Shown piece by piece: positions 13,696-36,836 of a stretch of DNA of 64,000 nucleotides. The DNA is taken from positions 310,001-374,000 of the forward strand of contig OZ287705.1 of assembly GCA_965649825.1 (NCBI GenBank), in the 5' to 3' direction. Numbering within the stretch: position 1 is the first letter of the stretch; the number at the start of each line of letters is the position of its first letter. A program made the position numbers and the translations under genes. The notes under the pieces were generated by a model. It saw only the letters and a program-made list of their open reading frames with translations, was not told the origin of the DNA and ran no database searches. Origin of the DNA: Penicillus capitatus. Lineage: Eukaryota; Plantae; Chlorophyta.

Positions 13696-13708
13696 CGCTC
13701 CGAAACCA
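13696..13708 (-). other. TRIM primer-binding site TGGTTTCGGAGCG
   Basis: Abuts the 5' LTR, starts with TGG, and is identical over 13 nt to the Gypsy PBS. Confidence 0.85.
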
Positions 13709-13997
13709 TGTGAACGTCGACCCGAGGGCCGAGTCCGGACCGGATGGCGAGCCGCGCAGGGAAACTCTGTCGGCAATGGCTATTTACATAGCTAGACAGA
13801 TACAGCACGGCAGCTCCGTTTAAATACCCCGGATTAGGAGGGTCACATCATTACGTAAGGCATATCGTCACACCTCTGTCACACGTCTCGTCCTGCGCTC
13901 CAATGATGTTCTGCTGGCGTGGCGCCACAGGGACGGTTGGCGCGCCAGCAGCGACTCCTCGACAGATGACTCGAGGCAGAACCAGTGACCCTTCACA
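13709..13997 (-). repeat. TRIM 5' LTR (289 bp); TATA-like TATTTAA at 13820-13826 (minus strand)
   Basis: Direct repeat of 12977-13265, followed on the minus strand by the PBS. Confidence 0.95.
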
Positions 13998-13998
13998 T

Positions 13999-14625: not shown

Positions 14626-14643
14626 TGGGCGCACCCGCATTCC
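14626..14643 (-). other. Gypsy motif at the PPT position (non-polypurine, ends in CCA)
   Basis: The sense strand reads GGAATGCGGGTGCGCCCA|TGTGAA, and the TRIM carries the same motif. Confidence 0.75.
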
Positions 14644-14732
14644 CGTTGCGCAAACTCCGATGTGCGGAGCAAAGAAGAAAACCAGCCCACACAGCCTACC
14701 TAGTTAAAATACTGATGACAGCAGATGGTTCT

Positions 14733-15752
14733 TCAGGCGCGACGGCGTATGAGCGCCCGGGGGTCCGAAACCCCCACCTTCGTTGTCTGCGACTGGTACA
14801 GATTTCCATTTACTCTATCTCGCGTCAGGTCGAAAGGCTGCATTATCTCTCTCCCCAGCCTCGTCTCCACCTTGTCTCCCGCGACGGTGAAATTGCAGAC
14901 TTCCATGTGGGGGCCGATCTTCACCCTCGCGGCGGTGCTGCCCACTATCACGCTTGTGCCGCCTTCACTGCGAATGACACGTCCCTCGATTCCTGGCGGG
15001 AGGGGCCCTTGGAGAGGCTGGACACGGAGTCCAAGCAGTTCCGCAGTCGCTCTGCTGACCACGTGACCCGAGAGCTCGGGGTCAATGAGGAAACGGTGTG
15101 GCAATTTGATCTCCCCGAGCTCCCCTGCGGCAATGTATCGCGGTCCTGGCGGTCGGCAAATGGCGGTGAGGGGCGGTGGGTGGGCTCGCGCTGAGAGGAG
15201 CGGCGATTCCGGAGGGGTAGGGGACGGAGGCCGAGGGGGCAAGGGGCTGCGCATCCTTCGCCGCGAGCCCTCCCCGCGACTTCCGCGGCCGCTCCTGCGC
15301 CGGCTTGTTTCGCCTTGGCTGTTTCCTCCACGTGTGGCTTCGACAGGGGTGCTTCCTCTTGTGGCTGGTGTGCCGGGTCCCTCTGCGCAGCGTCGCTCAA
15401 TCTCGGCTATGAGGTCGGCCAGGGTCAGGGAACGACATTGCTCCCTTACCTCGGCCGCCCTCATTTCCGCCATGCTGCGGTCCGTGGTAGGGGCCAGGTT
15501 GTCTGGTGACGGGGTTGGGGTCACGCGCCTGAGGCAGGTGAGACGGTGCAGGTTTCCCTCTGACGCGGACGAGCTTCTTTCCCTCTTCATGGCTTCGAAA
15601 ATGAGAGCGAAGGCGCCCTCGAGAACTCGGAACGCGACAAAGACGGAAAGGCCAACGACGAATTCCTGGGCTACGGCCGGCCACGATTCAATGAATGTCA
15701 GGAGAGTGAGCGTAAACACGAGCGCAAAAAAGCTGAGTACTGCGAAAGACAT
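14733..15752 (-). CDS. Gypsy ORF3 (339 aa, env position): two N-terminal hydrophobic segments, an Arg/Pro-rich linker and a retropepsin-like domain
   Basis: Hydrophobic aa ~2-21 and ~31-52. The C-terminal FLIDPELSGHVVSRATAELLGLRVQPL...LGREIM aligns with the element's own protease MLVDSGSSVCVMP...GWEIQPL...VGVNAL. Confidence 0.8.
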   Translation of the reverse strand: MSFAVLSFFALVFTLTLLTFIESWPAVAQEFVVGLSVFVAFRVLEGAFALIFEAMKRERSSSASEGNLHRLTCLRRVTPTPSPDNLAPTTDRSMAEMRAAEVREQCRSLTLADLIAEIERRCAEGPGTPATRGSTPVEATRGGNSQGETSRRRSGRGSRGEGSRRRMRSPLPPRPPSPTPPESPLLSARAHPPPLTAICRPPGPRYIAAGELGEIKLPHRFLIDPELSGHVVSRATAELLGLRVQPLQGPLPPGIEGRVIRSEGGTSVIVGSTAARVKIGPHMEVCNFTVAGDKVETRLGREIMQPFDLTRDRVNGNLYQSQTTKVGVSDPRALIRRRA

Positions 15753-16025
15753 GAGCGAGCAAATGGTGAAATCCCGGTGCGGGCGGTCCCTTTATACCCC
15801 CGTAACCTCCGAGGACACGTGCCCAGCGCGCGCCCTGACTGGCGGTTATCCTATGGTTCGCCCAAAGGTCATGGCATCCGTCGGGAGCTTCGCTCCGCTG
15901 GAGGAAGCTATCTTCCAACCATCGGGAGTTTCCCTACGCATTTGGTCATCCGCCGCAAACCGTTATGAACTTTGGAAGACAAGGGTGTATCCGTCAGCAA
16001 CCCGTCGGATTATCTAATGAGTGCG

Positions 16026-18887
16026 TCACATCTGCAGCAGCCGTAGCTGGTGCGAGTGACACGACCGGCGATTCCGCCCATCCAGTGTTTCGACCTCGAT
16101 GATATGCGGAGTGATAACAGCGCGGACGCGCCATCCCGACTCCCACTGGGCCGCTAGCTTATGTGCTGGCCGCGGCACCATGATTGCGACCTTGTCTCCA
16201 ACTCGCAGGTTTCTTCTCGTCGGGATGGTCCGCTCGTGTCTTGCTCTTCGCTTCCGCCGTTGGTCGTCCGAACGCTTCCATGCTCTTCCTTGGACTCTGT
16301 CCAGTTCCTCCTTCTGGAGCCGCGTACCATCGGCTCGTTTGCCCGTCATGACGAGACTCGGAGCGTATCCAAGCGCAGAGTGCCATGATTCGTTATACGC
16401 CTTCTCGATACGTTGGAGGAGTGACGGCCATGGCGCACTTGGGCCTTCTCTTCGGATTCGACCCAGGATGGTGCCAATTGCTCGCTCGGCCATTCCATTG
16501 CTCCAGTGAGCATAGGCAGGAGACAGTGCCATCTTCACGTGGCGCCGGCTGCAATACTCTTCGAAGTCGATGGATACAAAAGCTGCGCCTTGGTCACTTA
16601 CGAGCCGGCGAGGGGGCCCGAAGTGATATATCCATTTACGCAGTCCCGCCTTCGCGGCCTCGGCCGTCGGCCCTGCTGAAGCTGTGAGCATGACGTAGCG
16701 GCTGAATCCGTCTATCATGAGAAACACGTGCACGTTGTCTTCCTCCTTTTCCCAGTGTATGGGTCCGAGAAAATCACAAAAGACCGTGTCGTTTGGGCAG
16801 GGGCAATCCCACGAGCCCCAGACGGGTCGCTGAATGGGTCGTCCGTAGGCCTGACATTGCCTGCATCCTTGGACGAACTGTCGGACATGTGTTCTCATCC
16901 CTGGCCAATCCGCTCCCGTTGCTTTGAGGTTCCTCAGCGTTGTCTGCCAGTTGAAGTGCCCTTCGTGAGCCTTCTTGATCTGCCTCAGCTGGCCTCGTGT
17001 CGGGCCCGCCGTTGCCTGAGACACCTCGGCTGCGCCCTTTCCCTTACGGGGTCTGGATAAGAGGTCCGCGCCTTGGTTTTCTGCCCCGGGAACGAATTCG
17101 ACAATGAAGTTTTCGTTTCCTAGGAGCCATCCCAGTAGGCGCAGTACTCGCTTGTCCTTGAGACTTGGCGTGCTGGTGCTCAGTTGCTCGGCGACCGCTT
17201 GGTTGTCCGTCCGGATGAGCAAAGGAAAGTCCCCTCGCAACGGCTTTGTTGCTTGACAGGCCCACACGATTGCCTTGAGTTCCCCGAGGAAAGATGAAGT
17301 CACTTCCGGCACACTCTTGCTCCCGAGGTCGACGAGGTGCTCGTGGTTTGACCCTTTGGCCCACAGCAGATATCCCGCGTGCTCTCCGGACCAATCCGTC
17401 TCGAGAATGTATTGCGTCGTCCGGAGACCAGGCAGTTCGAGCAATACCTGTCGATCGAGGGCTCGCAGAAGCACCTCCCAGACTTCCCGTCGGGCTCGGT
17501 CCCACCACTTGCCGTCTTGTTTTCTTGCCTTGGCTTCTGCTAGCAGCTGTCGGAGGGGCGCTATCAATCTCTCGAGGTCCACAATGGTTCGCCTCAGATA
17601 GGAGAGCACTCCGATGAGGCGCTCAAGATCTTTCCAGTGCGTCACCTTTCCGAGTTGGGTCCAGCGACTGCGGAAGTAGTCTGTCAGCGTCCACGACCCA
17701 TGCGACAGTTCCATCCCCAGGAACTTGACTTTCGTCAGCAGGAGCTCGGTCTTCGCGAGGTTGACCTTGAGCCCGAACTCCTGGAAGCGAGCAAAGATGC
17801 TGCGGACGCGGTCACAGAGTTCTTCTGGGGTAGTACCACCGACAAGGAGGTCGTCGGCATACTGCACTGCGCCGAGCCCCTGTACAATCTCTGCTACCCG
17901 TTCCGCGAAGAGGATCGGACTCCATGACCATCCCTGCGGCAGGCGCTTCCAGGCGTAACGGCGGTCCTGCCAAGTGAACGCGAATGCAGACTGCAGCTCT
18001 GGGCACACCGGGATGGCGAAGAAACCATCCTTGAGGTCCAGCTTCGCAAAGTACCTCCATGCCGGGTCTACATCCCACAGCCGCCGCCAGACGTCGATCT
18101 GGGTCATTCCATGTTTCTTGAAGTGAGCGTTCAACCAACGAAAGTCGTTGGTGAACCTGTAGCTCCCATCCTTCTTTGGGATGGGGTACAGGGGGCTTAG
18201 AGCCACTCGCTCACCCATGGAGACCTGTCGGAGATAGCCGCGCTGAACATAGTGCTCAAGCTGTTCGGCTATCTTGCGTCGGTCGGCGACCTGCTCTGTC
18301 TTGTATGATGTGCGCAACCCTTGCTCTCTGGGTGGTGTCCAGCAGACTTCGTCGGCTCTGACCTGGAGGGGCTCCATTGCGGGCACGATGGGGTGCCGGC
18401 TTAGGTCGCTGACGTCAGGAAAACGACGCGCTAGCTCGTTTCGCAGGGACTCGGCAAGGGTGTCAACGGCGACTGAGCCGATCTTGGCTAGCCGGACTAC
18501 CTCAATGCTGCTGTGTCCGTGCAAAGAAACGAGGGGCGTGGTCGGAGTGACTCGAATCACTCTTTCTGACGTATTGTAGACCTCACATCGTACCATTCCT
18601 CCAGAGGTTACTACTACTCCAGATAGAACCTCGGGTCGCTGAAAACAGCTAGCTATGGTGACGCCGCCTTCTACTTCTAGCTTCCACGGGAGGTACCAGC
18701 GTTCCCAAGTCCTTGGCGGCAAGAATCTTGGCTTTCCACTTTGCAGCTGGACTCCCTTTGGAGTGACTGAGATTCCCGTTCCGTCCTTGATCTCCCATTG
18801 CTGGTGCACGCGAACAGTGCCGCCCCTCCCGTGGCTTTTGGAGGGGGCAGTTAGTTTGGGTGGTGCGCTGCTTGCACTGCCGCGCAC
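16026..18887 (-). CDS. pol: Gypsy Pol: dUTPase-like remnant, RT, RNase H, integrase with GPY/F-like tail
   Basis: RT motifs: PIPKKDGSYRF, LDLKDGFF, LPQGW, YADD (17850-17861). RNase H: ETD..GELKA..RTDN. Integrase: H-x3-H...CRQC, CDF, SDQG, NGMAE. Confidence 0.95.
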   Translation of the reverse strand: MRGSASSAPPKLTAPSKSHGRGGTVRVHQQWEIKDGTGISVTPKGVQLQSGKPRFLPPRTWERWYLPWKLEVEGGVTIASCFQRPEVLSGVVVTSGGMVRCEVYNTSERVIRVTPTTPLVSLHGHSSIEVVRLAKIGSVAVDTLAESLRNELARRFPDVSDLSRHPIVPAMEPLQVRADEVCWTPPREQGLRTSYKTEQVADRRKIAEQLEHYVQRGYLRQVSMGERVALSPLYPIPKKDGSYRFTNDFRWLNAHFKKHGMTQIDVWRRLWDVDPAWRYFAKLDLKDGFFAIPVCPELQSAFAFTWQDRRYAWKRLPQGWSWSPILFAERVAEIVQGLGAVQYADDLLVGGTTPEELCDRVRSIFARFQEFGLKVNLAKTELLLTKVKFLGMELSHGSWTLTDYFRSRWTQLGKVTHWKDLERLIGVLSYLRRTIVDLERLIAPLRQLLAEAKARKQDGKWWDRARREVWEVLLRALDRQVLLELPGLRTTQYILETDWSGEHAGYLLWAKGSNHEHLVDLGSKSVPEVTSSFLGELKAIVWACQATKPLRGDFPLLIRTDNQAVAEQLSTSTPSLKDKRVLRLLGWLLGNENFIVEFVPGAENQGADLLSRPRKGKGAAEVSQATAGPTRGQLRQIKKAHEGHFNWQTTLRNLKATGADWPGMRTHVRQFVQGCRQCQAYGRPIQRPVWGSWDCPCPNDTVFCDFLGPIHWEKEEDNVHVFLMIDGFSRYVMLTASAGPTAEAAKAGLRKWIYHFGPPRRLVSDQGAAFVSIDFEEYCSRRHVKMALSPAYAHWSNGMAERAIGTILGRIRREGPSAPWPSLLQRIEKAYNESWHSALGYAPSLVMTGKRADGTRLQKEELDRVQGRAWKRSDDQRRKRRARHERTIPTRRNLRVGDKVAIMVPRPAHKLAAQWESGWRVRAVITPHIIEVETLDGRNRRSCHSHQLRLLQM
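18822..18860 (-). promoter_or_regulatory. -1 programmed ribosomal frameshift signal (gag-pro to pol)
   Basis: The heptamer C-CCA-AAC (18860-18854) lies in the ORF1 frame just before TAA. After a 5-nt spacer comes a GC-rich hairpin (18848-18822). Pol is in the -1 frame. Confidence 0.85.
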
Positions 18888-21800
18888 ATAACCGAGCGCC
18901 CGTCCGGGGCCACGAGTCGGTTTCCCGCGAAATCCAAACTCCAGCCGAAATCTCGCAGAGCGTTTACGCCAACGATTGGGTGTTCAGGCCCGTCCACCAC
19001 GAGAAACGGCACTTGTCTTGTCTCTCCGCCAATGTCCACTGGGAGGCCCACTCGGCCTCGAACCTGGGTTGTCACACCGTTGAATGCTTGGACTTCCATG
19101 GGCTCAGGGAGGGGCTGTATCTCCCAACCACCTTGTATGCAGCGTTCCGTGGGCATCACGCACACGGAGGAGCCCGAATCCACGAGCATCTGGACTGGAC
19201 TAGCCCCCTCAGCCAGCTTGGCGCGTACGTAGTAGAGACGCGATGGGTCACTACTTGTGGCGGCGTCCCATACCGCTGCCACTGGTGGCCTGTCGCTTGG
19301 TCCCTCGTCGGGCGCTCGTTGCTGTTCTTCCGGGACGTGCACCACTTGCTGCCAGAAGTGTGGGCATTCTCCGGTTGCGTGATCTCGGGCGTTGCAGTTT
19401 GCGCAACGTCTTGGTGGCGGAAGCCGCGAGGCCTGCATAGCCGGTACGGCGGGCCTACCCATTCGTGGCGTCCTTGATGGTCCGGGAGAGGGAGGTCTGG
19501 GCATTGTCGGCCTGATCATGGGCGGGGGCTGTCCTCTTGCGGCGGCTGCCTGTCGTTCTTCTACGCGATGGAGTCGATCCAGTATGCTTTCGATACTCCC
19601 TAGGCCTTGGAGAACGACAGGATGCGGGGCCTGCGGGAGCTCGTCGGCTTCTCCGTCACTGGCTGGTCGGTCTTCCCATGCGACGAAAGGCCTAGCAGCT
19701 TGCTGTGGCTGTCCTTCGTCCGAGTTGTATCCCGTTCCCCTGCCTCCGCGCCCTCGACCGCGTCCTCGGCGCCCTTGATTTCTCCCACGTCCTTGGTGGC
19801 TTCTTCCTTGACCTCTTCCTTCGCGGGTTCCTCGCGGGACGGTGGGGGAGGGGGCCGCTGGTGGTGCCGGTGGCGGTGCTGTCATGTTGGCTTCCTGACG
19901 TGGTGCCGCTGGAGGTGCTGGCGGCGGTGCCACGTTGGCTTCCTGACGGGGTGCCGCATTTTGTTGTGCTGGCTGCGTCGCTGGCTGCTGTCCGCTTCGC
20001 TGTTGTTCCCTCTGCTGGTTTTGATGAGCGGCAGCTGTCCGAGCCCTGCGAGGTCTTTGCGGTGGCGGCACCGGGATTGGTTGTGTTCGCTGTTGCGAGA
20101 CGAAGCTTCCGATAAAGAGCAGTGGCTGGACAACGAGCCAGTAAGCGACCCAAAAAGGGAAGTAAAGGACCGCAGCAGTGCCCCACGTCAGGCTGTAAAT
20201 ACTGCGCATGGTGTCCTGTCCGAGATCGACGACCGAGTGAACTCCGTCGGCGATCCTCTTGACCACGGTGGCGACCAGAGCTAACGTCATGAGGATTCCT
20301 ACCAAGGCCAGCACGAGCAGGATCAGTCCGAGGTTTTGATTGCTTCCGGCGGCCCTAACGCTGAGGAGGGCCTGGAGGCCGTCGACCATGTTCGGACTTA
20401 TGACGAACCGAAGCAGACCCACCGCCCAGTGCGCTGGGCTCACGACAAACCCATACCATCCTGCAGCCCATGCGCCCCACGTTCTTGTAGGTGGCGCCTG
20501 GACCGAGCGAGTAAAGGTGGCTATCATATCTGCGCTTGCCGCAAGCTTCCTGGTTTGCTCAAGAACGGTTGGCATGAGTTCTCGGACTGCCCCCAGCTCA
20601 CCCTGCAGTTGCCCCTTGATTGCGTTCACGCCGTCTTGTGCTGCCCTAGCGATGGCTCGGTCGATGACTTGGAGTACTTCCCATCCTTTTTCGTCAGCTT
20701 CGTCCGTCATTTGTCGAGCCATTTGTAGGATGCTGAGATTGATCTGGTTGACGGCGCGGGTCGTCCCCGTGAGGAAGGACGTGGTTCCAGCCTCAGCTGA
20801 CGACGGGGGTGCCAATGTAAACTTGTGGTGCCAGGCTGAGCCGGTAACCCGTCGCCGGTGCATTCTCGTCAGGGCTTGCTCATAGTGTTCTTTCAGCTTG
20901 TCCATCTGTTCCCTGGCGAGCTGTCCGCGTCGTTCGGCCTTCTCTCCCCAACGCCTGGAGAATTCGAGGGCGTCGTTGGCTATGTCCACCAGTGATCGAT
21001 TCTGATACATACGCGGGCTCACTCCCAGGTATCCAGCATAAATTTCCTTGGCGGCTTCCTGGAACGCGGCGTGTAGGACCTTTTCGTCTAGGTCGAAGAT
21101 GAGCGGTTGACACTCTGTGCGCCAGCCATACAATGTGGGCATCCAGGTCTTTACCAGTCGCTCGCCCAGGGGGCAATTCGCGAGGTCTTCGACTTTAGTT
21201 GCGAACGCAGAGAACTGGCGCTCAATGCGTTCCTCCATCGTATATGGCATGCCGAACATCCGGATGGCTGCCACATGCATGACTGGAAAGAGGCATAGGT
21301 ATACGAAAAAGGTAATCCACAGAATCGTGCTTGTCTTTCGCCGTCCCCGGGGCCTTGGGTTGTCTCCTTCGGAGGGACCTTCGTCAGGTCGCTCTGGCAG
21401 CTCATCCCTCCCGAGGTCTTGCAGCGCGTTGTATGCTTTCGTGGCGTTTTCCGACAGCCACTTCCCCAAGCGTGCGAACCAGTCATACTTGTAAGCGCAT
21501 GTGAGGAGGACGACTAGTGCAATGAATGCCGCGGTACGCAGGGTGCTGCCCCAAGCCCAATCCCAGAAGATGCCGAAGACGCAGAGAATGGTAGCGCCAA
21601 TAGCAAGCTCTTCCACACGAGGGCCTCTCCCTTCGGGTACGGGTGATGGTCTGGCCCGAGGTCGTGGATGCGGGCCGTGCTCCAGCGCTCTTCGACGGGC
21701 TTCTTCGGCGAGTCGTTGCTGCTCTGGGTCGGCTAGAATCTCTGAAGCGGTTCTCTGAACGTCGCGACTCGACCCCGCTCCGAAACCATGTGAAGATTCA

Positions 21801-21916
21801 TCTTTCCCGGCCTTCTTGCCGACCTCCGTCACGATGTCTTCCGCCCTTACTTTGTGGACGGGTGGTGGCGGCACGCTCGGCAGGACCGGGCCTTCGACGT
21901 CTCCGGAATGACTCAT
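18851..21916 (-). CDS. gag: Gypsy ORF1 (1021 aa): multi-TM Gag-like protein, CCHC zinc knuckle and aspartic protease
   Basis: CANCNARDHATGEC (CX2CX4HX4C) and LVDSG are present, with several long hydrophobic segments in the N-terminal ~610 aa. The ATG lies inside the 5' LTR. Confidence 0.9.
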   Translation of the reverse strand: MSHSGDVEGPVLPSVPPPPVHKVRAEDIVTEVGKKAGKDESSHGFGAGSSRDVQRTASEILADPEQQRLAEEARRRALEHGPHPRPRARPSPVPEGRGPRVEELAIGATILCVFGIFWDWAWGSTLRTAAFIALVVLLTCAYKYDWFARLGKWLSENATKAYNALQDLGRDELPERPDEGPSEGDNPRPRGRRKTSTILWITFFVYLCLFPVMHVAAIRMFGMPYTMEERIERQFSAFATKVEDLANCPLGERLVKTWMPTLYGWRTECQPLIFDLDEKVLHAAFQEAAKEIYAGYLGVSPRMYQNRSLVDIANDALEFSRRWGEKAERRGQLAREQMDKLKEHYEQALTRMHRRRVTGSAWHHKFTLAPPSSAEAGTTSFLTGTTRAVNQINLSILQMARQMTDEADEKGWEVLQVIDRAIARAAQDGVNAIKGQLQGELGAVRELMPTVLEQTRKLAASADMIATFTRSVQAPPTRTWGAWAAGWYGFVVSPAHWAVGLLRFVISPNMVDGLQALLSVRAAGSNQNLGLILLVLALVGILMTLALVATVVKRIADGVHSVVDLGQDTMRSIYSLTWGTAAVLYFPFWVAYWLVVQPLLFIGSFVSQQRTQPIPVPPPQRPRRARTAAAHQNQQREQQRSGQQPATQPAQQNAAPRQEANVAPPPAPPAAPRQEANMTAPPPAPPAAPSPTVPRGTREGRGQGRSHQGRGRNQGRRGRGRGRGGRGTGYNSDEGQPQQAARPFVAWEDRPASDGEADELPQAPHPVVLQGLGSIESILDRLHRVEERQAAAARGQPPPMIRPTMPRPPSPGPSRTPRMGRPAVPAMQASRLPPPRRCANCNARDHATGECPHFWQQVVHVPEEQQRAPDEGPSDRPPVAAVWDAATSSDPSRLYYVRAKLAEGASPVQMLVDSGSSVCVMPTERCIQGGWEIQPLPEPMEVQAFNGVTTQVRGRVGLPVDIGGETRQVPFLVVDGPEHPIVGVNALRDFGWSLDFAGNRLVAPDGRSVMCAAVQAAHHPN
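21776..21788 (-). other. Gypsy primer-binding site TGGTTTCGGAGCG (degenerate tRNA-iMet type)
   Basis: Abuts the 5' LTR and matches 10 of 12 positions of the plant-type iMet PBS TGGTATCAGAGC (recalled; the host tRNA is not in this window). Confidence 0.8.
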
Positions 21917-22415
21917 TTCACAAGCGCAGCGGAAGTCTTGGAAATAGAAGGAGTGATGAGCGGTTCTTGAGGGGTTAGCGACGTTTTGGGAAGTTCAGAG
22001 GTTGCAGCCAAGAGACAACTTGTTACAACTGAGAAGTAGACAGCGAATGTTTTGACGGATTGTATGTGATTCAGAACACAAGTGCAAACTTTGATGTTTT
22101 TTACGAAAGGTGTTTTTATGTGTCAAAACCTTGCTTAAATACTCCGACCCCGATGTGACGACAGGAAAATCAGCTGAACTTCAAGAGTGAGTTCGCAATG
22201 AGGTTCCCACTGAAACCAGGTAATTCATCATGAACTTCTAGAAGTTTCCTAGGAACTTCTTAGGAACTCACTCCCAGTCACCATTACTTATTCGCGACTC
22301 AGCAGCGACGGTTACGTCGCACAGCCAAAGACGCGACAAGTGCCAAGTGACAGGAATATCATTATTACAGAGACGTCCCATCACCGTTTTGTCAGAATTG
22401 CGCCATTCTTTCACA
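21789..22415 (-). repeat. Gypsy 5' LTR; TATTTAA at 22135-22141 and a 3-unit HSE-like motif at 22235-22249
   Basis: Direct repeat of 13999-14625, followed on the minus strand by the PBS. Confidence 0.97.
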
Positions 22416-26814: not shown

Positions 26815-29800
26815 ATGCGCATGATAAGAAACGGACTGGCTGTCGCTGGTGCCATCCTCTTTCTCCTTGTCTGGGCCGTCGTCAGTCAAACGCCGATCGC
26901 AGGTAATTCCTGACATTCACGAGCAGACGAGCATTCCTTCATGACACAAAGTCCTTTCTCGGCTTGGACCCTCGTCGCGCATCGCATCTTTTCTGCTCGT
27001 CTTCCGTTCGCTTCTTTGTATCTGTGGATACGTCGTCGACTGCGTCTGTGTGCAGACTCGAGATGCAAACTCCCTGAAGACGTTAAAGAAGAACTCCGCG
27101 TCGGTGAAGATCGGACATGGCGTATCACCGAAGCGCTCCAAGAACAGCACGGCATTCAGCAAATCATCGATTGCGCAGAACAAGGCGACGTCGTATCGCT
27201 GGATACTTCGCTGGCGATTCGACCGTCGACGAGAATCGTGATTCAGCGCGATGTGACCATAGTGGGAGGCCAGCGACTCGGCGGACGATCTCCGACGAAG
27301 CGAACTGCGTTCATCTGCCCTCCAGACAAAGGACTGTTTCTTCTGAAGTGCGTCTCGCCTGTCTTCCGCTTCACAAACACACTGTGGACTGCAGAAGCGG
27401 CTTCTCCTTGGTCAACGTTGTTATTAAAGACTGCCATCTGACCGAGGAGCACAAAGTCGCGGCCATCATCGAAGCGGACTCCTGCCAGCAGTCATCTTTT
27501 GTGAGGCCCAAAGTGTATCTTTCCAACGTGCAGTTCCAAAACAACACGAATCGCGGCGGATCTGCGGGTCTCGTCGTGCAAGGTCCGTCGTGTGACGGCG
27601 TGGTCGAACTGCTCGACGTCGCATTCAAGGAGAACGTGTATTCCAAAGCATCCGTGTTGGCGAGAGAGAACACTTTGACGGACGTTCGAGTTGTCGGCAA
27701 TCGAAGAATTGCTAACAACAACCAGGAGACGTCTTTCTTTTGCCTTCCCGACAATTCCTCATCAAAGGTGACGAAAATGACGGCGAAGGACAACGCGAAT
27801 GCGGGCGTTCTTTACGTCGAACGGGGGGAGCTGAACGTTTCGTCCTCTCTCTTCCAGAACAACGCCGGAAAATGGAACGCGGTCGTCGAGACTTTGTCGT
27901 CTTCGCTGATCGTGCGTGAAACGCGTTTTCTCGACAATTCCTGCAAGTGCCGCGCCGTGGCAGTCTTCGGACATCAACCACTGTCGTTTGACTTTTCGTC
28001 TTGTACTTTCGCTGGCAACGTCGCTGACGGCAAGGACAGTGGCGTTGTCTATGCGACGAATCCGCGCGTCCTGCGTTTTTTCCTATGCGATTTCGTCGAC
28101 AACGTCATACGCAGTTCGAATGGAAGGACGGTTGCGTTAGATGGGCTTGACTCGGAGACAAAGGAGGAAGGGCGAGAGATCACGACGGTCGTGGAATTCC
28201 TCCGCTGTCGGTTTTTGAGAAACGCGGCTGCCTATGTGACGGCCGTGCGCCTTTATGAAGTCCGCGCACGAACAGTTTTCTTCCATTCCTGTCACGTGCA
28301 GAACAACACGACACCGGACGATTCCCCTGTGCATCGACAGACAGTGGTCCTTGTGAAGGATAGTTTTCTGCACAATCTCACGATGGCGAACTGCACGTTC
28401 GAATCGAACGACTGCACTCGACATGTGCTGTCGCTCTTCTCCGCCAATGGCACGTTCTGGATCCGAAACACCTCCTTCGCCGACAACAGAACTCCTCAGG
28501 CTGGGCAAGGGAGCACGCTGAATGTACAGAGAAGAACAGTGAGCAACGAGCACTTGTTGGCGCAGAGCGCCTCTGACAATGGAGCCGTCCTCAGTGTGGA
28601 AGATTCAGAGTTCCGAAGAAATGGTGGCGACTTGGCTGGCGGCGCCGTGCATGTGGCAGATGAACAAACGCGGGTGGAGCTGCTCGACAGTCGATTCCTG
28701 GATAATCGCGCTGAGAAGGGCGGGGCGGTTTTCGTAGAGAATGCTCGCTTAGTGGATATCGACAACTGCACTTTCGCGCGGAATAGTGCCACAGATGTTG
28801 GCGGAGCGATACGTCTGCAGAGTGGTAGCGCAGAAATCCGGAAGTGCACTTTCGTTGAGAACACGGGCGAGCACGGCGGTGCGATCGATACCATGACGAA
28901 CATCCTGGTCCAGGACTCAGAGTTCTTCGGAAACAAGGCCAGCATCAGAGGAGGCGCCATGAGTATCAGATGCCTAGAATCTTTTCCTTGCAAGCCACGC
29001 ATTCTCGGATCCGCATTCTGGCGAAATCGAGCAGGCAGATCTGGCGGCGCTCTCCACGTGTACGCGAGCGGAACGTTGCCACTAGAGAACTGTCGTTTCA
29101 TCGAGAACAATGCGACATATGGTGGAGGCATTTCGCTGTTCCGTGTGCGGAAGAGTGCGGGGTGGTACATAACGAACTCGAATTTCTCTCGGAATAGTGC
29201 AGCGACAGGAGGTAAGGCACGAGATCCTTCCTCGTTCAAATCTAACTGGGCTGCCTTGATCGCAGGAGCGATTTCGATAATGGACAGTGCGGAAGAGCAA
29301 TCCTCGAATCGGTCGCAGAACGACGTTGCCGGGAGGTTCTACTTCAGCGGCACCGTCATCACGCAGAACACCGCGACGCTGTCGGGCGCCGGCATCTTCG
29401 CCGAAGATCCATCTCTCCTCAGCATCGACGGGTCATCGGTAAACGTGCCAGAGAAAACGTTCAACTGCCAAACCATGGAGACACCGCCGAGCAGTGCTCT
29501 CGGGAAGATTTTTCGAAACAATACTGTCGTCGGAGGACACGAAGAGAATCTGGCAAGTTTGCCTGTCGGCTTCTGCGTCTCTGTCTTCAAAGGAGGTCGA
29601 CTGGCAGACACCATCTCGGAAGACAGTACGTACGTGCTGCCTCGGTGGCGAAGCGGCGACGATTTCCCAGTCCTGCGCGTGATGATGTACGACCCTTTTG
29701 CGAACATCTTTGCGCATACCAGGAATCGAGACTGCAAGAGAGGGACGACGTCCGTCGACGAGCCAGAGGAGGCGTACGAGCAGCCCGTCAATGCAGTGCT

Positions 29801-31952
29801 GTTTTCAGAAGCGGAAGATGCGTCTATGGGCCGCTTCTTGATGAACAGCGTGTACGAAGACATCTCCTCCGGCGGCGGTAACATATCCGTGGGCAATCCC
29901 TACGTCAAACCAGGACGTTATCGACTCACACTGCTGGTTGAGGGATTCGAGCAACAGAACGTGACGCTGGAAGTCCACGTCCGCGACTGCACCATCGACG
30001 AAGAGTCCGACCGCGACGACACATTCTGTCGTCCTTGTGACTCGAACCAATACAACTTCCAATCGGCAGGCTTGGCGTGGAAGTGCACACTCTGTCCAGA
30101 GAACGCCGACTGCACGACGGAGTTCATACTCCCGAGAAAAGGTTTCTGGAACGCGTTTCCGTGCTCCAACCAGATGGAGCGATGCGTCTACAAAGACGCG
30201 TGCAACTTCACTGGATCGGACAAACTGGCGGCGCTGACCGAGTTTGAAACGCCTTGCGTCTTCAGCGACGACGCCATCGAGCAGTACCAATCCAGTGAGT
30301 GCGCCGAGGAGTACGAGGGTCCGCTGTGCGGGTCCTGTCTTGACGACGCAGGCCGACTGGGAAGCTTCGTCTGCGCGCCCTGTATGTCGGAGTTTCTTTC
30401 CGTCGTCGGGCTTCTTGGCCTTCTGGTTCTCCAGTTGATCCTCGCCCTCTTGCCGATGCGAGAGACACTGAACGCCGAGCGCGATCATCAGGAGGACAGA
30501 ATGACGGCTTTGAGTTTTATGCGACGAACGAGAAGAGCGACACGTCCCCCTGGAAGATACGAATTCGCTGGCGGCGGGCGGAGTTCTCGAGTGAGAACCG
30601 CGATCGTGCGAACTGGAACGACGACGATCCGCTCGAACGCCCGCAAAGCGAGCAGAGCCAAGCAATGTTTTCTTGGAACGTTAAAGGTAACCCTGTCCTC
30701 CGGACGGCGGTCGAATCTCAGTCCTGTCTTATAGATCACTATCAATTTTCTCCAAACAGTGGCTATTGCAGCCTCGTTGGACGTCTCGTGGAACTTCACC
30801 GCCATCTCTTTCTTCAGAACCTGGGGTAAGTAATCGTACTCGAAGAAAGAACGTTTCTATGCAAACTGCGCCTTTTCAGATTCTATGAGCGCTGCTGCCT
30901 CCGTCGGGGCTTCGTTGTTTCTGGACTGTTTGCTCTCCGGCAAAAGTGGAGCTCCACGAACTGTCAAGCGCCAGATCATCGTTGCACTGCTACCAGAGAT
31001 CGTCGCCCTCGTCATTTCGTTGTTCTTTCTTCTGAGAGAGCTAAAGGGGGACAAGGACTGGAACAGACTCCTCAGAAGAGCCATCCTGGCCCACATCGTC
31101 GTCGGCTACAACTCTTATCTCGTACTGGTAAAGGTCGCCATCGATGCATTCAACTGCGTCCGCGTGCACGATGGCATCCGTCTCGAAGACATCGGCATGA
31201 CGCATCGCTACTGGATCGCAGACACGTCTGTGGAGTGCTTCAGCAGCACCCATCTGAACTTCACTCTTGCCGTCTCCGTCCCACTGCTTCTCTTCGCCAT
31301 CCTGTTTCCACTTCTGCTGGTCATTCTTCTGGAACGCGCTCGTGGACAAAACAAGCTCTCGTCCAAGTGGACGCAGGAGACGATGGGATTCCTGTTTATC
31401 GTTTTCGAGGAGAACTACGTCTACTGGGATTGTCTGATCCTCTTGCGAAAGGCCATTCTCTCGGTCATCATCGTCTTCGCCTACAGACTCGGAGGCAATC
31501 TCCAAGGTCTTCTCGTAATGGCCGTCCTCGTCATCGCTCTCTTTGTGCAAACGTATCTCGGTCCTTTCAAAAAGGAACTGGTCAGTTTGAACGTACTGGA
31601 AAGCGTTTCCCTTCTGGTGAGTTTCTTTACTTTTATGTGTGGACTCATTCTGAACAACGAGAGATTTCACGGTGTCCTCATGAAGGGACTCGTCACGGCA
31701 CTGCTGCTCAGCAGCAACGTCGGACTTTTTGTCATTCTCGTTTTCTTCTTGGCGCGAAGCAAGTTGGAACAAGTCAGATTGGAACTTAAGATGATGCAAG
31801 CTGATGCCGGCAACGGGTCTCTTCACCAAATCGCATGGTCTTATCTGACATTCCAGATTGCACGTCTCCGGGGACTGATTGATAAGCAGGACTCGGTCGA
31901 CGACGCGGAAGAGTTAGTTCCGCAACCATCCATTGAGCTTTCGGGGGTGTGA
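26815..31952 (+). CDS. Large cell-surface membrane protein: signal peptide, pectin-lyase-like beta-helix (Pmp-type GGA[IV]/FxxN repeats), Cys-rich region and multi-pass TM C-terminus
   Basis: Exon 1 (26815-26902) encodes MRMIRNGLAVAGAILFLLVWAVVSQ. Repeats of the form F..N.A..GGA[IV] and the Cys-rich CRPC..CTLCPENADC..GPLCGSC follow, then a hydrophobic ORF at 30885-31952. GT-AG introns include 27348-27394. Confidence 0.85.
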
Positions 31953-32919
31953 ACAGCAACTGCTATTCTCCTGTCTCACAAACAAGCGTTTCACAGCGTC
32001 TTTCTTTGCAAATATTCTTTCTCTTCTGCACATTCGTTTGTGTAGCGAACTGAAAGAGCGTTGCTGCTCGATCACGAGTTGCATATTATGGTCGTAAGGG
32101 GGGCGGTTATGGTCTACTGTTTCTTTGAATGGAAAACGTCGAAGATGTTGTGCAGCTTTCGTTGTAAACGGCGTTTGAGTGTTTGGTGTGTCTTTGCGTG
32201 TCTATTGGACGGCATCCATTTCGAAGGTATCCATTATTCAGGGTAGTCTACGCGAGCGGCATGCCGACTCACTGATTTTGATAACTGAAAACAGAATCTT
32301 CTACGCGCAAACAGATTCTGCCTGGACCTTGCAGTCAAGTCACGCATCGTCATAAAAGAAGCTTTCATCATCAGGCCATCCGCCAGCCTAGGAATCACCG
32401 CTGTCATTGCTGCCGACCGGCGAGCGACCTCAGACGCAAACTTCTTCACGACTAAGACAATCGCCAGTGGCGACAGGCAACCAAAAAACGTTCACCCGAG
32501 AGCGGTCTTCGGTACTCGGTAAGTACTCCGGAAAGCGGATAGCTTGAACTAACCCTCTTTGTCACAATGGCTTTTCAGCTGTCGCCTCAAACTCCGTTAA
32601 ATTGTAGGAAAGTCTCGCCGACAGAGCCAACAGAACGAACGACCTACGAGATCTTGTGTGGACTGTGGATTGTCTAGCAGAACGGTGAGTGATACTGTCG
32701 CCGTCTTCAACACTCAAGGACGTAGCTGTCGAGACGAAGCGTGAATGTTTTACATTCTTGTCATCATATTCTGTTGTAAGAACATAAAGGCAGTAAATAG
32801 TTTAGCTTTCGGAGCTGCTGGTTAGTTACAACGCTAGTAAACTTATCTACACAATCTAAAAACGCAAGTACGAAAACTGATACGTCAAAAGACGTGGTCT
32901 TTCGGTGACATCAGCGTCG

Positions 32920-33003
32920 TGGCTAGGGTGACTGCTCAGTCGAGTGACCGAACAGTTTCGACGGCGCCACCCGTCTCATCAGACCCCTTGAGAGTTTTTG
33001 CCG
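32920..33003 (-). ncRNA. Type I hammerhead ribozyme HH1; predicted cleavage between 32930 and 32929
   Basis: Minus strand: ggggt-CUGAUGA-gacgg(gtggcg)ccgtc-GAA-actgttcggtc(actc)gactgagcagt-C-accc. The core is complete, stem III has 11 bp, the triplet is GUC, and stem I is accc/gggt. Confidence 0.9.
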
Positions 33004-33087
33004 ATTTAGCGCTATCCAGTCCCGCCACGAGGAGGCACGGCTCGACGATGCGTTGGCAAACGCACCGCCGTTGGGACCACAATATTT

Positions 33088-33552
33088 GGTGGTAATCACG
33101 AAATGAAATGCCATTTTATGGGATAATCACGAAAGTGCCTTGGGTAATCACGAAATGAAATGCCATTTTTTGGGATAATCACGAAAGTGCCTTGGGTAAT
33201 CACGAAATGAAATGCCATTTTTGTTTTTTCTTTTTTTTTTTTTTTGTTTTTTCTTTTTTTTCTTTTTTGATTTTTTGGGGTAATCACGAAATGAAATGCC
33301 ATTTTTTGGGGTAATCACGAAATGAAATGCCATTCCTTGGGGTGGTAATCACGAAATGAAATGCCATTCCTTGGGGTGGTAATCACGAAATGAAATGCCA
33401 TTCCTTGGGGTGGTAATCACGAAATGAAATGCCATTCCTTGGGGTGGTAATCACGAAATGAAATGCCATTCCTTGGGGTGGTAATCACGAAATGAAATGC
33501 CATTCCTTGGGGTGGTAATCACGAAATGAAATGCCATTTTGGGGTAATCACG
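33088..33552. repeat. 34-bp minisatellite (ggtaatcacgaaatgaaatgccattccttggggt), about 7 near-perfect units plus variant units and a T-rich insert
   Basis: The 34-nt period is readable from 33311 onward. Variant units occupy 33088-33310. Confidence 0.95.
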
Positions 33553-34125
33553 AGGATGTCCTTCCTTCCGGGATTCCTCAACCAGGTCGAAGGGAAGGCC
33601 GCCTACAAGGGACGACCCTCACCCCGCCTTCGGGACTAACGGGTGGGCCCGACGCCGTAGAAGCCGCTCAACAGTCCGCGCCACAACCGTCGCACGATTG
33701 CCGCCATCGACGGCAGCGTCTCATGCGCTGTGTGAAAGGTTCTTTATCGACGGACAACCGAACGACGAGTTCGACGTAGTGGGACCGGAGCTGCGCAACT
33801 GTGGGGGAGTATCTCCCGGAAAGAAGGGCCATCCGAGGATGTCCCCCCAATCCGAGATTCCTCAACCAGGTCGAAGCAAAGGCCGCCTACAGGAGACGAC
33901 CCTCACCCCGCCTTCGGGACTAACGGGTGGGCCCGACGCCGCAGAAGCCGCTCAACGGCCCCCGCCACAACCGCCGCACGATTGCCGCCGTTCTCGGCAG
34001 CGTCTCATGCGCTGTGGTAAGGTCTTCGATAGTACAATACTTCAATATGACGGACAACCGAACGACGCGTTCGACGCATCCGGACTGGAGCTGCGCAACT
34101 ACGGGGGAGTATCTCCCGGAAAGAA
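33552..34125. repeat. Two diverged ~283-bp tandem units (starting at 33552 and 33835)
   Basis: Both units share gaggatgtcc...gattcctcaaccaggtcgaag...cttcgggactaacgggtgggcccgacgcc...gggggagtatctcccggaaagaa. Confidence 0.9.
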
Positions 34126-34151
34126 AGACGAAAAATGGTACGCGTCATCAC

Positions 34152-34470
34152 TTATATACCCCTTCAGATGATGTGACAGCGTCACATCGTTTTGTCGCGC
34201 AATCAGCCAATCACGACGCGAATTCGGAATACTAACCGTCGGAAGAAGAAGCTGGAAGGAAGACGTCGATGCAGCCGATAGCCAATCACGTTGCAGTATC
34301 GGAATATTCCATCTGTCACATCAGAATATTCCATCTGTCACGTCAGAATAATCCATCTCCATCTGTCACATCGGTTTCTCGTCGATTCAGCCACTCAGCG
34401 CGCATCTTTGGCAGTCTAACCGTCCTCAAGGTGACGTTGACAGGGTCGCGTCAACGTCCAAGTATTTAAG
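34152..34470. promoter_or_regulatory. Candidate divergent Pol II promoter
   Basis: TATATAA on the minus strand (34152-34158) and TATTTAA on the plus strand (34463-34469). Two agccaatca CCAAT boxes (~34205, ~34280) and several GTCACA motifs lie between them. The same TATTTAA occurs in both LTR families. Confidence 0.55.
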
Positions 34471-34928
34471 GGGCTCCGCGACGCGCATTTCGTCTTTTGT
34501 CGTTAGGGCGGTTCTACTGGTGGGTTCTCGCTCCCGGGTTTCGGCTCGGAACACAGAACGCCAAAAACCGGGCCAGTGCTGCCAGGCTATAAGCCGCCGA
34601 CCCGGCCCGTCGGTGTTGCGAGGCGCCCCTTCGGGAGGTGCTGCTGACCATCACCTTCCCGCCGCGGTTGGCGCGTGCAAAGGTCGTTAGACGCTGGATT
34701 CGGAGTGTCTAAGGCGTGTTGCGAGGCATCACTTAGGTGGCGCTGCTGACCTCCACACCTGGCTCCGAACTTTGCGCTCCGCCGCACGCTTAAGACATAC
34801 GGCTCCACTGCGCTAATGCCACGCCGCCTTCGGGTGACGCGTCACTGGTTCAGTGGGGAGGGTGGGCTTGGGGTTATCCTAGCCAATCCGGATCTTTCCG
34901 GATCCCGTCGAGGGTTTTGGTGCCTCGA

Positions 34929-34986
34929 CGTGAAGGGGTCTGACGAGACGGGTGGCGCCGTCGAAACCCTTAGGTCTTTTGTTTAC
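34929..34986 (+). ncRNA. Minimal hammerhead HH2; predicted cleavage after 34976, with a weak stem I
   Basis: CUGACGA-gacgg(gtggcg)ccgtc-GAA-acc(ctta)ggt-C. Stem I is mostly G-U pairs with a U-U mismatch next to the core. Confidence 0.65.
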
Positions 34987-35151
34987 GTGTCTCCATACCG
35001 CGCGCGCTCGATTTACGCGTTCCATTCTCGCTCTCCGTGTCGGAGCTCGGCCGATGTCAGACGCATGAGTAGATCTGCCGCCACCATACGCCGCATCACG
35101 GTTCTTCTGCGTCGAACGCGTCGCTGCTGCGTTCTGGATCGTGCCGAGTCG

Positions 35152-35230
35152 TGGCAAATGGGTCTGACGAGACGGGTGGCGCCGTCGAAACCGCAGAGTG
35201 CTTCGTTGCATTCGGTGGTCACCCTAGCCA
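35152..35230 (+). ncRNA. Type I hammerhead ribozyme HH3; predicted cleavage after 35220
   Basis: tggc-aaat-gggt-CUGACGA-gacgg(gtggcg)ccgtc-GAA-accgcagagtgc(ttcgtt)gcattcggtggt-C-accc-ta-gcca. All three stems form, and stem I has an internal loop. Confidence 0.9.
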
Positions 35231-36836
35231 GTCGTTTTTACTTTTTTGCCTCTCTACTGCTTATTTTCCATCCATCTGTCGGTCTTCAAGCGTCAACGCT
35301 GAAAACCCTAACAGCCGACGACAATACGATCTACGTGTATATGAGCGCTCCCTACGTTTTTAAAGCCTTGCAAAGCAAACGAAAGCACCACTGCGCTGTG
35401 TCTCTTATGCGTCCGTCCGCCTGTGAAGTGGTCAAACCCTAGTTTGTTTATTGTAAATGCAAACCTGGAGCCGATGCATTTTTGAAGAGGAGTACTACTG
35501 GAAAGTAGACTTCTGCCTCTGTCTGGTCCAGAGTGACAGAGCCTTCCTCTGGTTTTCTGAAGGATGGATTTTTCAAATTTTCCTTGTGACAGCAAAGGTC
35601 ATGACAGAAACAGACAATCAGCACATCGACCTTGGCGTTCATCCAAACATCGACGAAGCGATACCACGTTGCAAGGGATAATGGGCCCGTAAAGCTTTCG
35701 AGGAACATTCTCGCAGCATGAACTGGCGATTCTCAAAGTTTGCCGTTGCATTGGTCGATTCCAACACCTGAGCTCTTCATTCGTTTTTTAACAAGAGTTC
35801 ACTCCCTCAGCACTGTCACCGTTTTCACGTCAAGAAACGTTCTAAACGCGCATCTTCGTTCTCCTCGCGTCGTCACACAGACAGAGATTGATCTCACGAG
35901 AACACACTCAAAGAATGGTGTTTGTGGCGAATACATAACACAGGCTTTTTGGTACAGAGCTGAGGTCGCAGCTCCCCTGCGTTCATGTCTCACTAGTTTT
36001 GAATAACTGACACACTCAGTGCGATGCTAACCGCCATTGAAAATGACGAAAACCAAATCGTCACTTTGTACAGGACAGGTCTTCTGCCTCGTTTCGCAGC
36101 TGAGTTTGTTGAGGACACGCCGACAGGCAGCAGTCTCTCGTCAACGCGGACTTCCAATAGAGAGTGGACGCGCACGGTGTAGAAATAGACGCATCCTTTT
36201 TACTTCACCAGACCTCCGCCGTCCATACCGGGTGCGTCGCGCGATGACAGAAACTGCTTCGAATCGGCAATGTCGACGCGGCCGGTCATGCTTACTAAGG
36301 ACGTGACTGATGCAAGCATCGTTCTTCTTAATCAATGTTTTCCCCGTTCGTGCTTAGTCTGTTGCATAAACAGGACAGGAAGTCAAGCAATCCACGGCCT
36401 TTTCCGCTGAACGTTCTTGCAAAGCGGACACCGTCTTTTCCGCTTTTCGTGAGCCTCCCTCCTCCAGCCACGACAATCATTGCATCTCGCGGCCCCATCA
36501 CTCTCTGTCGGCGTGCCGCATCCGACAAGACTGTCCACAAGACGGCCGATACCCTTGCCGCAGGAGATAGAAACCTCTCGCCGTCGACGCGAGTTCACTT
36601 TAGCACAGTAAGTGCGTCGAGCTTCTCTCTCACAGCAGGAACGGCTTCCTTTATCGCGGCGGTTTTGCCAAGGTTCTCAACAAGACTCGACAGTCGCGGC
36701 GTCTGACAACGGACAGACGAAGAAGCAAAACTCGGGACGGTGAAAGCAACACCTTCCGTCCTCGGAACGCCGACGGACTATTCAACCTTTTATCCCTCCC
36801 TCTGAGCAACAAAGCAGTCGGTCCTCAGGGAGTCGA

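Follow-up and report, generated by a model that had tools for sequence, protein, structure and literature searches.

What would be set free if the hammerhead ribozymes predicted at this locus cut the RNA that carries them? The original prediction saw two hammerheads on the same strand, HH2 and HH3, and proposed that they excise a 244-nt RNA that could close into a circle. We followed this up in the window, by which we mean the whole 64,000-nt stretch of DNA that was analysed and to which positions refer unless another locus is named, and in related loci. Between 32910 and 35230 the window holds what reads as a 2.3-kb stretch without a protein, framed by three hammerheads; no reading frame with a Pfam match and no tRNA gene was found in the locus. 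The role that the analysis suggests as most likely for HH2 is a different one, namely to trim a noncoding transcript at its end, and not to free a 244-nt circle.

Three predicted hammerheads in one locus

The sequence CTGACGAG-ACGGGTGGCGCCGT-CGAAA occurs twice on the plus strand, at 34940-34966 (HH2) and at 35164-35190 (HH3), and a third copy of the core (CTGATGAG...) is found on the minus strand at 32956-32982 (HH1). The two same-strand hammerheads with identical core and stem II had thus been placed at the right coordinates. Exact matches to CTGANGAG-N14-CGAAA number three in the window against 0.02 expected by chance from shuffles, and the 14-nt stem II, ACGGGTGGCGCCGT, is identical in HH1, HH2 and HH3. 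The CUGANGA...GAAA core with the G10.1-C11.1 pair closing stem II is present in the three window copies and in two loci from elsewhere, L005 and L002. Three helices can be drawn round the core, together with the A15.1-U16.1 pair and an N-U-H cleavage site; the cleavage triplet is GUC in HH1 and HH3 and GUU in HH2 and L005.

Judged by their modelled folds, HH1 and HH3 are well-formed type I hammerheads for which self-cleavage is predicted. HH1 (32910-33007, minus strand) has an 11-bp hairpin as stem III. Its C17 is position 32930, and the predicted cut at 32930|32929 is directly followed by ACCCUAGCCA, which forms the 3' side of stem I and corresponds to 32920-32929 in reverse complement; distal stem I pairing is possible between AUCGGC and GCUGAU. 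The constrained hammerhead fold of HH1 has an energy of -35.0 kcal/mol, as compared with -36.2 kcal/mol for the minimum free energy structure. HH3 (35152-35230, plus strand) combines a 5-bp stem II with a long stem III hairpin at 35190-35219, and its stem I is formed by GGGU/ACCC, then a 4x2 internal loop, then UGGC/GCCA (UGGC-AAAU-GGGU against ACCC-UA-GCCA). The forced hammerhead fold of HH3 is at -33.9 kcal/mol and the minimum free energy structure at -38.5 kcal/mol. With a complete type I fold and the GUC at 35218-35220, HH3 is predicted to cut at GUC|A (35220|35221), in agreement with the site originally placed after 35220. The stem III hairpins of HH1 and HH3 are both long and their sequences are unrelated.

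Beyond the ribozyme parts, the flanks of the three hammerheads show no significant similarity to one another, and the direct repeat formed by HH2 and HH3 extends over 36 nt with nothing further in common. The sequence shared by the three predicted hammerheads is exactly what a hammerhead requires. In a pseudo-alignment of six family members, whose substrate and enzyme strands were picked by hand and set in register, 89% of the stem cells pair across the six hammerheads and six pairs, mostly in stem III, are changed on both sides, values reached in none of 500 shuffles and biased towards the structure by the hand-picking of the strands. Searches of Rfam returned no family, hammerhead or other, for the whole window at the gathering score or for three regions at E<=10. 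The missing hammerhead match is likely due to the long stem III hairpins and the 54-nt insertion in stem I of HH2. A literature string search found no paper printing the core sequence.

The predicted HH2 cleavage site and its conservation

HH2 can be folded in two ways. In the type III reading (34864-34976, plus strand), the substrate strand is the upstream GGGGUU|AUCCUAGCCA, which can pair with both arms of the HH2 core, and the cut falls at 34875|34876. Stem III would pair 34864-34874 with 34966-34976, starting from GGGU (34871-34874) and ACCC (34966-34969) and extendable to 9 of 11 positions. Stem I would pair 34876-34880 with 34935-34939 (AUCCU against AGGGGU, 34934-34939), with two hairpins (34886-34903 and 34906-34930) as its cap; the core and stem II follow at 34940-34966. 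In the alternative type I reading (34966-34988, plus strand), ACC-CUUA-GGU forms stem III, UUUUGUUUACGU provides the 3' side of stem I, and the cut falls at 34976|34977. The energies of the two folds in the window, -74.4 kcal/mol for type III and -73.7 kcal/mol for type I, are about equal, so that the window by itself is undecided between them. Of shuffled versions of the 150 nt preceding HH2, 2.8% contained a substrate site fitting the HH2 arms; for the 9-mer AYCCTAGCC, which is common to HH1, HH2 and HH3, the value was 0.05%.

The comparison with a second genome bears on this choice. A protein-space search of 5.8 billion clusters, using a 208-codon frame that lies over the hammerheads as query, matched two loci and nothing else. 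L004 is a 97%-identical allele or strain from the same assembly as the window (ERZ25074695, in which the window is ctg340041), and L005 is a locus from a different assembly, ERZ26696514. The query frame itself (34816-35442) is regarded as spurious. L005 has a single hammerhead, of type III, with its core at 10122-10148 and its cut at 10060|10061. The substrate strand, GGGGUU|AUCCUAGCC, is upstream as in HH2, and the two-hairpin stem I is also as in HH2, with several one-sided changes. There is no GGU downstream of the L005 hammerhead, which makes the type I reading impossible there and leaves the type III fold alone. HH2 is thus better read as type III, with the predicted cut at the conserved site 34875 and not at 34976.

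This changes several parts of the original prediction. Of the two cuts, the one after 35220 stands, and the one after 34976 gives way to the type III site that is conserved in L005. The degenerate copy of the terminal motif noticed at 34873-34885 is present, with its 11/13 match, and it is not a leftover, as the motif pairs with the arms of HH2. A minimal HH2 with a 3-bp stem III can form in the window and is absent in L005. Stem I of the type I HH2, previously called weak, pairs at 10 of 12 positions, though with U.U at 1.1-2.1. Cleavage of a minimal HH2 as a dimer had also been suggested; its loop CCUUAGG is non-palindromic, and a dimer mechanism would therefore bring no gain. On the folds proposed here, HH3 presents the design of HH2 in circularly permuted form, both using the substrate strand AYCCUAGCCA, and the same catalytic core is set in type I and in type III topology within 2.3 kb.

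Conservation between the two genomes is concentrated around HH2. From 34813 to 34970, a block of 158 nt matches L005 at 85% identity, and the rest of the putative transcript and the promoter-like region could not be aligned to L005 by BLAST. The window and L005 loci are not syntenic. As compared with L004, the substitution rate was 5.1 per 100 nt in the intergenic DNA left of HH1, 0.95 in the putative RNA body, 2.0 in HH2, 1.3 in HH3 and 0.72 in the right flank, with no substitution in the 171 nt of HH1 and its adjoining 100 nt or in the 63 nt of the module that precedes the HH2 cut. The sole change in HH3, G35181A, is in loop II and the same variant is found in L005. The allele rates are uneven and the right flank is low as well, so that they are supportive of constraint and short of decisive.

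The family seems to have roughly a single locus in each genome. Searches with a relaxed descriptor and with an nhmmer profile, run on about 190 kb from the two genomes (the window and about 125 kb of related loci), detected no further hammerheads besides those of L004 and the one of L005. Three paralogous or syntenic loci reached through a beta-helix gene (L001, L006 and L007) have no hammerhead. A scan of the JGI metagenomes with the core pattern gave one 1.2-kb contig, L002, and two viral scans and one scan of bacterial/archaeal genomes gave no match.

A candidate noncoding transcription unit

The DNA between HH1 and HH2 is made up of several distinct parts. Next to HH1 are tandem repeats (33091-33545) consisting of a 52-mer in 2.5 copies, a T-rich run (33218-33276) and a 34-mer in eight copies. 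The motif AATCACG is in all of these repeats and likewise in the CCAAT boxes described below, and the copy number of the repeats differs between the window and L004. They are followed at 33546-34130 by a unit of about 290 bp that is present twice in direct orientation, at 90-92% identity. Its two copies have no significant similarity to other parts of the locus, which ruled them out as degenerate copies of the RNA module.

The promoter-like region at 34131-34496 was read by eye, and its function and elements are putative. It has a TATA on the minus strand (34152-34159), CCAAT boxes (34207-34211 and 34282-34286), three 22-mers with GGAATATTCC that resemble heat-shock elements (34298-34358), and a plus-strand TATA, TATTTAA (34463-34469), which is TATATAA in L004. 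CCAAT, CCAAT and TATA occur in the same order in both genomes, some 300-350 nt upstream of the conserved block: at 34207, 34282 and 34463 in the window, and within 9600-9710 in L005 (about 9600, 9651 and 9701), where the last element is TATAAAAA.

The putative noncoding transcript body (34497-34812, plus strand) contains no ATG and is poorly conserved. Its folding energy is not in excess, with z = 0.0 in the window and -1.9 in L005. The lack of both excess structure and sequence conservation leaves a trans-acting role of the body unsupported. Close to its predicted start, GUUAGGG (34502-34508) is complementary to UCCUAGC (34877-34883) and to CCCUAGC (35222-35228). A UAGGG motif complementary to the substrate strand is found about 41-44 nt after the TATA box in both genomes, the pairing being GUUAGGG with UCCUAGC in the window and GGCUAGGG with UCCUAGCC in L005.

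The conserved 3' module (34813-34875, plus strand) ends at the predicted HH2 cut, GUU|A. It consists of a UUCG-capped hairpin (34822-34839), a CACUG-GUU-CAGUG hairpin (34843-34855) and a G-quadruplex-type tract, GGGGAGGGUGGGCUUGGGG (34855-34873). In the conserved block, GGGGAGGGUGGGnnnGGGG is a canonical G-quadruplex motif, and its last tract also serves as the 5' side of stem III. This conserved module of two hairpins and a G-rich tract precedes the hammerhead in both genomes. Downstream, the spacer between HH2 and HH3 (34977-35151, plus strand) has no similarity to other parts of the locus. TGTAA, a possible polyadenylation signal of the green-algal type, is found on the plus strand at 35452-35456, 230 nt beyond HH3, and again on the minus strand at 32830-32826, 100 nt past HH1. 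TGTAA is not enriched overall, and its reading as a polyadenylation signal is thus a hint at most.

With these parts in place, the locus looks like a bidirectional noncoding RNA polymerase II unit. Our tentative preference is for a noncoding transcription unit, present in low copy number and probably read by RNA polymerase II, in which hammerheads built into the transcripts form their ends. Direct observation covers the motifs and how well they fit the hammerhead fold, along with their conservation and low copy number; the promoter and transcript ends, in vivo cleavage and any part played by the G-tract are inferred. In this model a CCAAT/TATA promoter of the RNA polymerase II type would start a plus-strand transcript near 34497. 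About 380 nt downstream of the start, the type III HH2 would cut after U34875, producing a capped 5' RNA with two small hairpins, the G-quadruplex-type tract and a 2',3'-cyclic phosphate at its 3' end. The released 5' RNA would be separated from any poly(A) tail. HH3, with the same core and substrate strand, would make a second plus-strand cut at 35220, and HH1 would cut a transcript running leftwards from the same promoter region. Three cut sites and a 380-nt RNA lacking a poly(A) tail are predictions of the model, as is a possible 345-nt circle. Two other assignments were tried and rejected. RNA polymerase III would terminate before the core at the T4/T5 runs in the stem I hairpins, and a telomerase RNA is not supported, as the two transcript bodies share no template-like CCCTAA/CCCTAAA permutation when read from their sequences.

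Several points count against the preferred model. The promoter, start site and transcribed strand are putative and rest on reading by eye, and the Rfam hammerhead models give no score even at the E<=10 threshold. The module is in two independent genomes alone and in non-syntenic positions, which a mobile origin fits too, and a variable 5' part with a conserved 3' module has the look of non-autonomous retroelements. In the window, moreover, the modelled type I HH2 is energetically as good as type III.

Almost all hammerheads of eukaryotic genomes lie in repetitive retroelements. A few, among them those of Clec2 3'UTRs and amniote introns, seem to have been taken over for functions of the host, with roles that are unclear. 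The mammalian Clec2 3'UTR carries a discontinuous type III hammerhead with an enlarged helix I (PMC6155905), and by analogy this is the closest working counterpart of HH2. Like it, HH2 would be of type III with an open stem III and a helix I enlarged by an insertion; it would occupy a 3' position in a polymerase II transcript, ahead of the polyadenylation region, is low-copy and conserved between species, and its cleavage would part the transcript body from the tail (PMC6155905). Unlike Clec2, in which the insertion is 150-1500 nt, HH2 has a helix I insertion of 54 nt with two hairpins, its host is a microbial eukaryote, and two further type I copies bracket the locus. The RNA upstream of HH2 is also without a reading frame, so that the likeness to Clec2 is one of the manner of working and not of membership. 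By analogy alone, a parallel can be drawn with MALAT1/mascRNA, in which, as proposed here, the 3' end of a noncoding polymerase II transcript comes from structured RNA and not from polyadenylation, and the new end has a compact protective structure, here a possible G-quadruplex whose role is conjectural. MALAT1 differs in relying on RNase P, which cuts a tRNA-like element, and on a triple helix instead of self-cleavage.

If the preferred model is true, the locus would be a non-animal case of a co-opted hammerhead, low-copy and conserved between two genomes, with the ribozyme sitting exactly at the end of a noncoding transcript. The two topologies within 2.3 kb would then link co-opted hammerheads with their presumed tandem or circular ancestors. 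If the locus is a retroelement relic, it is ordinary.

Possible circular RNA, mobile-element and other origins

The alternative nearest to the original prediction is that the right arm represents a possibly domesticated unit, either retrozyme-like or derived from a retroelement, in which RNA between cuts is ligated to a small circle. Candidate circles are 345 nt (34876-35220), 244 nt (34977-35220) and 101 nt (34876-34976), and such a circle could be template or product in an RNA-based copying cycle. RNA between two cuts would have a 5'-OH and a 2',3'-cyclic phosphate, termini of the kind sealed by RNA ligases, and a circle is thus possible in principle. The two or three same-strand cut sites agree with this. 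The 244-nt circle does not fare well, since its junction, GGUC-UUUUGUUUAC, fits stem I of neither hammerhead. In contrast, the junction of the 345-nt circle, GGUC-AUCCUAGCCA, fits stem I of HH3 as well as the genomic ACCCUAGCCA does. If a circle forms, its self-consistent size would be 345 nt, not 244 nt. The circular permutation of HH2 and HH3 is what a tandem or circular ancestor would leave, and together with the fitting 345-nt junction it keeps a retroelement origin, and even a circle, in play. The conserved 3' module, the variable 5' part and the absence of synteny are also reminiscent of a non-autonomous retroelement, a Ty3/gypsy element lies 13 kb off (at 16-22 kb), and eukaryotic genomic hammerheads are mostly borne by retroelements (PMC6155905, PMC7229834).

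Several features of the locus speak against this. The proposal that the right arm is built from retrozyme-like units fails in that there is no repeated unit, only the 36 nt common to HH2 and HH3. Plant LTR retrozymes have type III hammerheads in direct repeats of 300-400 bp around a noncoding centre of 300-600 bp, and give circular RNAs of 600-1000 nt. The locus resembles them in its type III hammerhead, its probably green-lineage genome and two same-strand cuts that could give ligatable ends. It differs from them in several respects. No LTR-like direct or tandem repeat was found round the hammerheads and no direct repeats of 300-400 bp, the flanks of HH2 and HH3 being unrelated. There was no match to the tRNA-Met primer binding site TGGTATCAGAGC with up to two mismatches in 32900-35300. 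A dispersed multicopy family with 4-bp target-site duplications was not found either, the protein-space search giving one locus per genome; GTCG flanks the inverted HH1...HH3 pair and not a retrozyme unit. Retrozyme monomers are described as highly stable structures (PMC4918200), whereas folding of the 244-nt and 345-nt pieces does not exceed that of shuffled sequence (z = +0.71 each). L005, finally, has a single hammerhead and hence no second cut. On balance we regard a retroelement-derived, circle-producing unit as the main rival of the preferred model and as somewhat on the unlikely side.

A more specific version of the cellular reading is unlikely as a whole. It takes the locus as a single-copy cellular noncoding gene of a green-algal lineage that makes its own 3' end by the type III hammerhead, and adds a switch, masking, terminators and a 345-nt RNA. 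The G-quadruplex tract, being the 5' strand of stem III, could switch cleavage on or off, and the 5'-terminal UAGGG motif could mask the substrate strand. The two permuted type I copies could act as terminators flanking a bidirectional, possibly stress-responsive promoter. HH2 and HH3 could free the 345-nt RNA, whose ligated junction would rebuild a complete hammerhead.

Could the pair of inverted type I hammerheads instead mark a Penelope-like insertion, a full or non-autonomous element with an inverted 5'-truncated copy, perhaps of the endonuclease-free kind? Insertions of this make-up are frequent among Penelope-like elements and leave inverted hammerheads at the two ends, and in the endonuclease-free kind telomeric repeats in reverse complement come after a hammerhead. 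HH1 and HH3 share type I topology with the hammerheads of metazoan non-LTR retrozymes, satellites and Penelope pLTRs. With HH1 and HH3 facing in opposite directions, the locus agrees with the published architecture of an inverted 5'-truncated copy (PMC8557442). This inversion and the permutation between HH2 and HH3 also bring to mind tandem or inverted Penelope-like insertions, and the tiny stem III in the type I reading of HH2 recalls minimal Penelope-type motifs. In Athena/Terminon elements the hammerhead runs straight into (ACACCC)n or (TCACCC)n (PMC6431247). After HH1 and HH3 there is a single ACCCTA/TCACCC unit, GUC|ACCCUAGCCA holding TCACCC and a telomere-like CCCTA(G) unit, and L005 has GAAACCCTAC. 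Against this, no reverse transcriptase or GIY-YIG frame lies between or beside the hammerheads; 32800-35500 has no reverse transcriptase frame, and the sole one among the long frames scanned is that of the Ty3/gypsy element. The arms share nothing outside the ribozyme, and head-to-tail type I monomers of 150-400 bp are absent, with no tandem repeat spanning the hammerheads and a unique spacer. There is one telomere-like unit only, and the locus is internal in a 234-kb contig. Stem III of HH1 and HH3 is long, not minimal as is typical there, and the copy number is low. We consider a Penelope relic improbable.

A non-autonomous DNA transposon of 2.3 kb would have terminal inverted repeats of 13 bp, TGGCTAGGGTGAC ... 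GTCACCCTAGCCA, and a 4-bp target-site duplication, GTCG. The inverted termini at 32920-32932 and 35218-35230 are indeed perfect over 13 nt, and GTCG is directly outside both. However, the 13 nt correspond to hammerhead positions 16.2 to 1.10, and as strands of the ribozyme they are already accounted for by ribozyme function. With no transposase, no other copies found, a module without such termini in L005 and a weak 4-nt match in GTCG, we consider this origin very improbable. That the 208-codon frame is a real gene, with the hammerhead-like strings incidental or regulatory, is hardly tenable: it is predicted by gene callers in all three loci, starts in both genomes at the first ATG of the putative transcript (none occurs earlier after the predicted start) and has 24 similar N-terminal residues between genomes, but it has no Pfam match, 1-nt and 2-nt indels between the genomes leave the residues in between unrelated, the frames are unrelated past residue 55, and the substitutions are not concentrated at synonymous sites (3/8, hand count).

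Some observations were made on the surroundings of the two loci, and the first two of them hint at a host that is probably a green-alga-like eukaryote. The Ty3/gypsy element in the window, 13 kb from the hammerhead locus, has a pol whose closest named relatives are in the green alga Caulerpa lentillifera. A mitochondrial uL30 at L005 is closest to plant and green-algal mitoribosome proteins. Blastocystis was considered as host and rejected, the TGTTTGTT motif showing no enrichment. The beta-helix gene adjoining the window locus has close relatives in ENA metagenome assemblies alone.

ATG-free leaders and the frames of the 3' module

A conserved ATG lies inside the 3' module, the block of two hairpins and a G-rich tract that ends at the HH2 cut, at 34816 in the window and at 10001 in L005, the second genome with a single hammerhead. 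Between the predicted transcription start and this codon, ATG is absent in both genomes (window 34497-34815 and L005 9735-10000), where about three would be expected in each case. The frames that start at the conserved ATG are broken by indels when the window genome is compared with L005, and they look non-coding.

A possible trans target of HH2

Each of the two 290-bp direct repeats carries one GGGUC|GUCCCU site on the minus strand, at 33618 and 33902. The site matches both arms with which the HH2 core binds its substrate, ACCC and AGGGGU, and its triplet is GUC, which is optimal. If the minus strand is transcribed, it could in principle be cleaved in trans by HH2 RNA. Sites fitting the HH2 arms occur about once per 16 kb, as counted in the window.

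Repeats around the promoter-like region and beyond the hammerheads

In the interval from the CCAAT boxes to the TATA box are three 22-nt repeats (34298-34358), each containing GGAATATTCC, a two-unit palindrome that resembles a heat-shock element. The 97%-identical L004 allele has two copies rather than three, and a counterpart of these repeats is absent in L005. Further upstream, 33091-33545 is occupied by tandem arrays whose components are a 52-mer, a 34-mer and a T-rich run. The tandem unit here contains AATCACG, a heptamer that also follows both CCAAT boxes, and the copy number in these arrays is unequal between the window and L004, with 227 indel columns.

Just 3' of HH3 are the 9-mer AAACCCTAA (35303-35311), a plant telo-box or telomere-like sequence, and GGTCAAACCCTAG (35430-35442), which is similar to the HH1 and HH3 cut site GGTC|ACCCTAG with two extra A. 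Directly 3' of the L005 hammerhead, a 29-nt unit, TTACCCTACTACTGTCTGTTTTCGTTTAC, is repeated in tandem about 4.5 times (L005 10153-10300), with ACCCTAC in every unit. Its relative in the window is a single stretch only, TTTTGTTTAC at 34977-34986.

A metagenome motif and neighbouring elements

The scan of JGI metagenomes returned one match, L002, in which an HH1-like core is accompanied by a stem III hairpin (L002 352-400). There is an 8-nt offset between its ACCC strand and the cut site, so this hammerhead is probably inactive or non-canonical. About 150 nt downstream on the same strand, a reading frame (559-1107) ends in PGVYIRISYMWEWI and there resembles a trypsin-family protease; the core also has GTTTAGGG about 190 nt upstream of it.

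The window also holds a minus-strand Ty3/gypsy LTR retrotransposon (about 13700-21920), whose nearest named relatives are in Caulerpa lentillifera. It comprises a gag-protease frame (18851-21916) and a pol frame with RT, RNase H and integrase (16026-18887), both on the minus strand, and the primer-binding-site-like 12-mer TGGTTTCGGAGC occurs at both 13697 and 21777. On the plus strand, 27117-30734 encodes a right-handed beta-helix/PMP-repeat protein of 1205 residues. Its close relatives (50-61% identity) were found only in ERZ25074695 and ERZ26696514, the ENA metagenome assemblies that contain the window and L005; the next matches come from bacteria and align over short stretches with less than 40% identity. 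Left of HH1, a segment of about 60 nt (32724-32785) has two matches of 80-84% identity, in inverted orientation, in L001, one of the paralogous or syntenic loci found through the beta-helix gene, and is possibly a small dispersed repeat.
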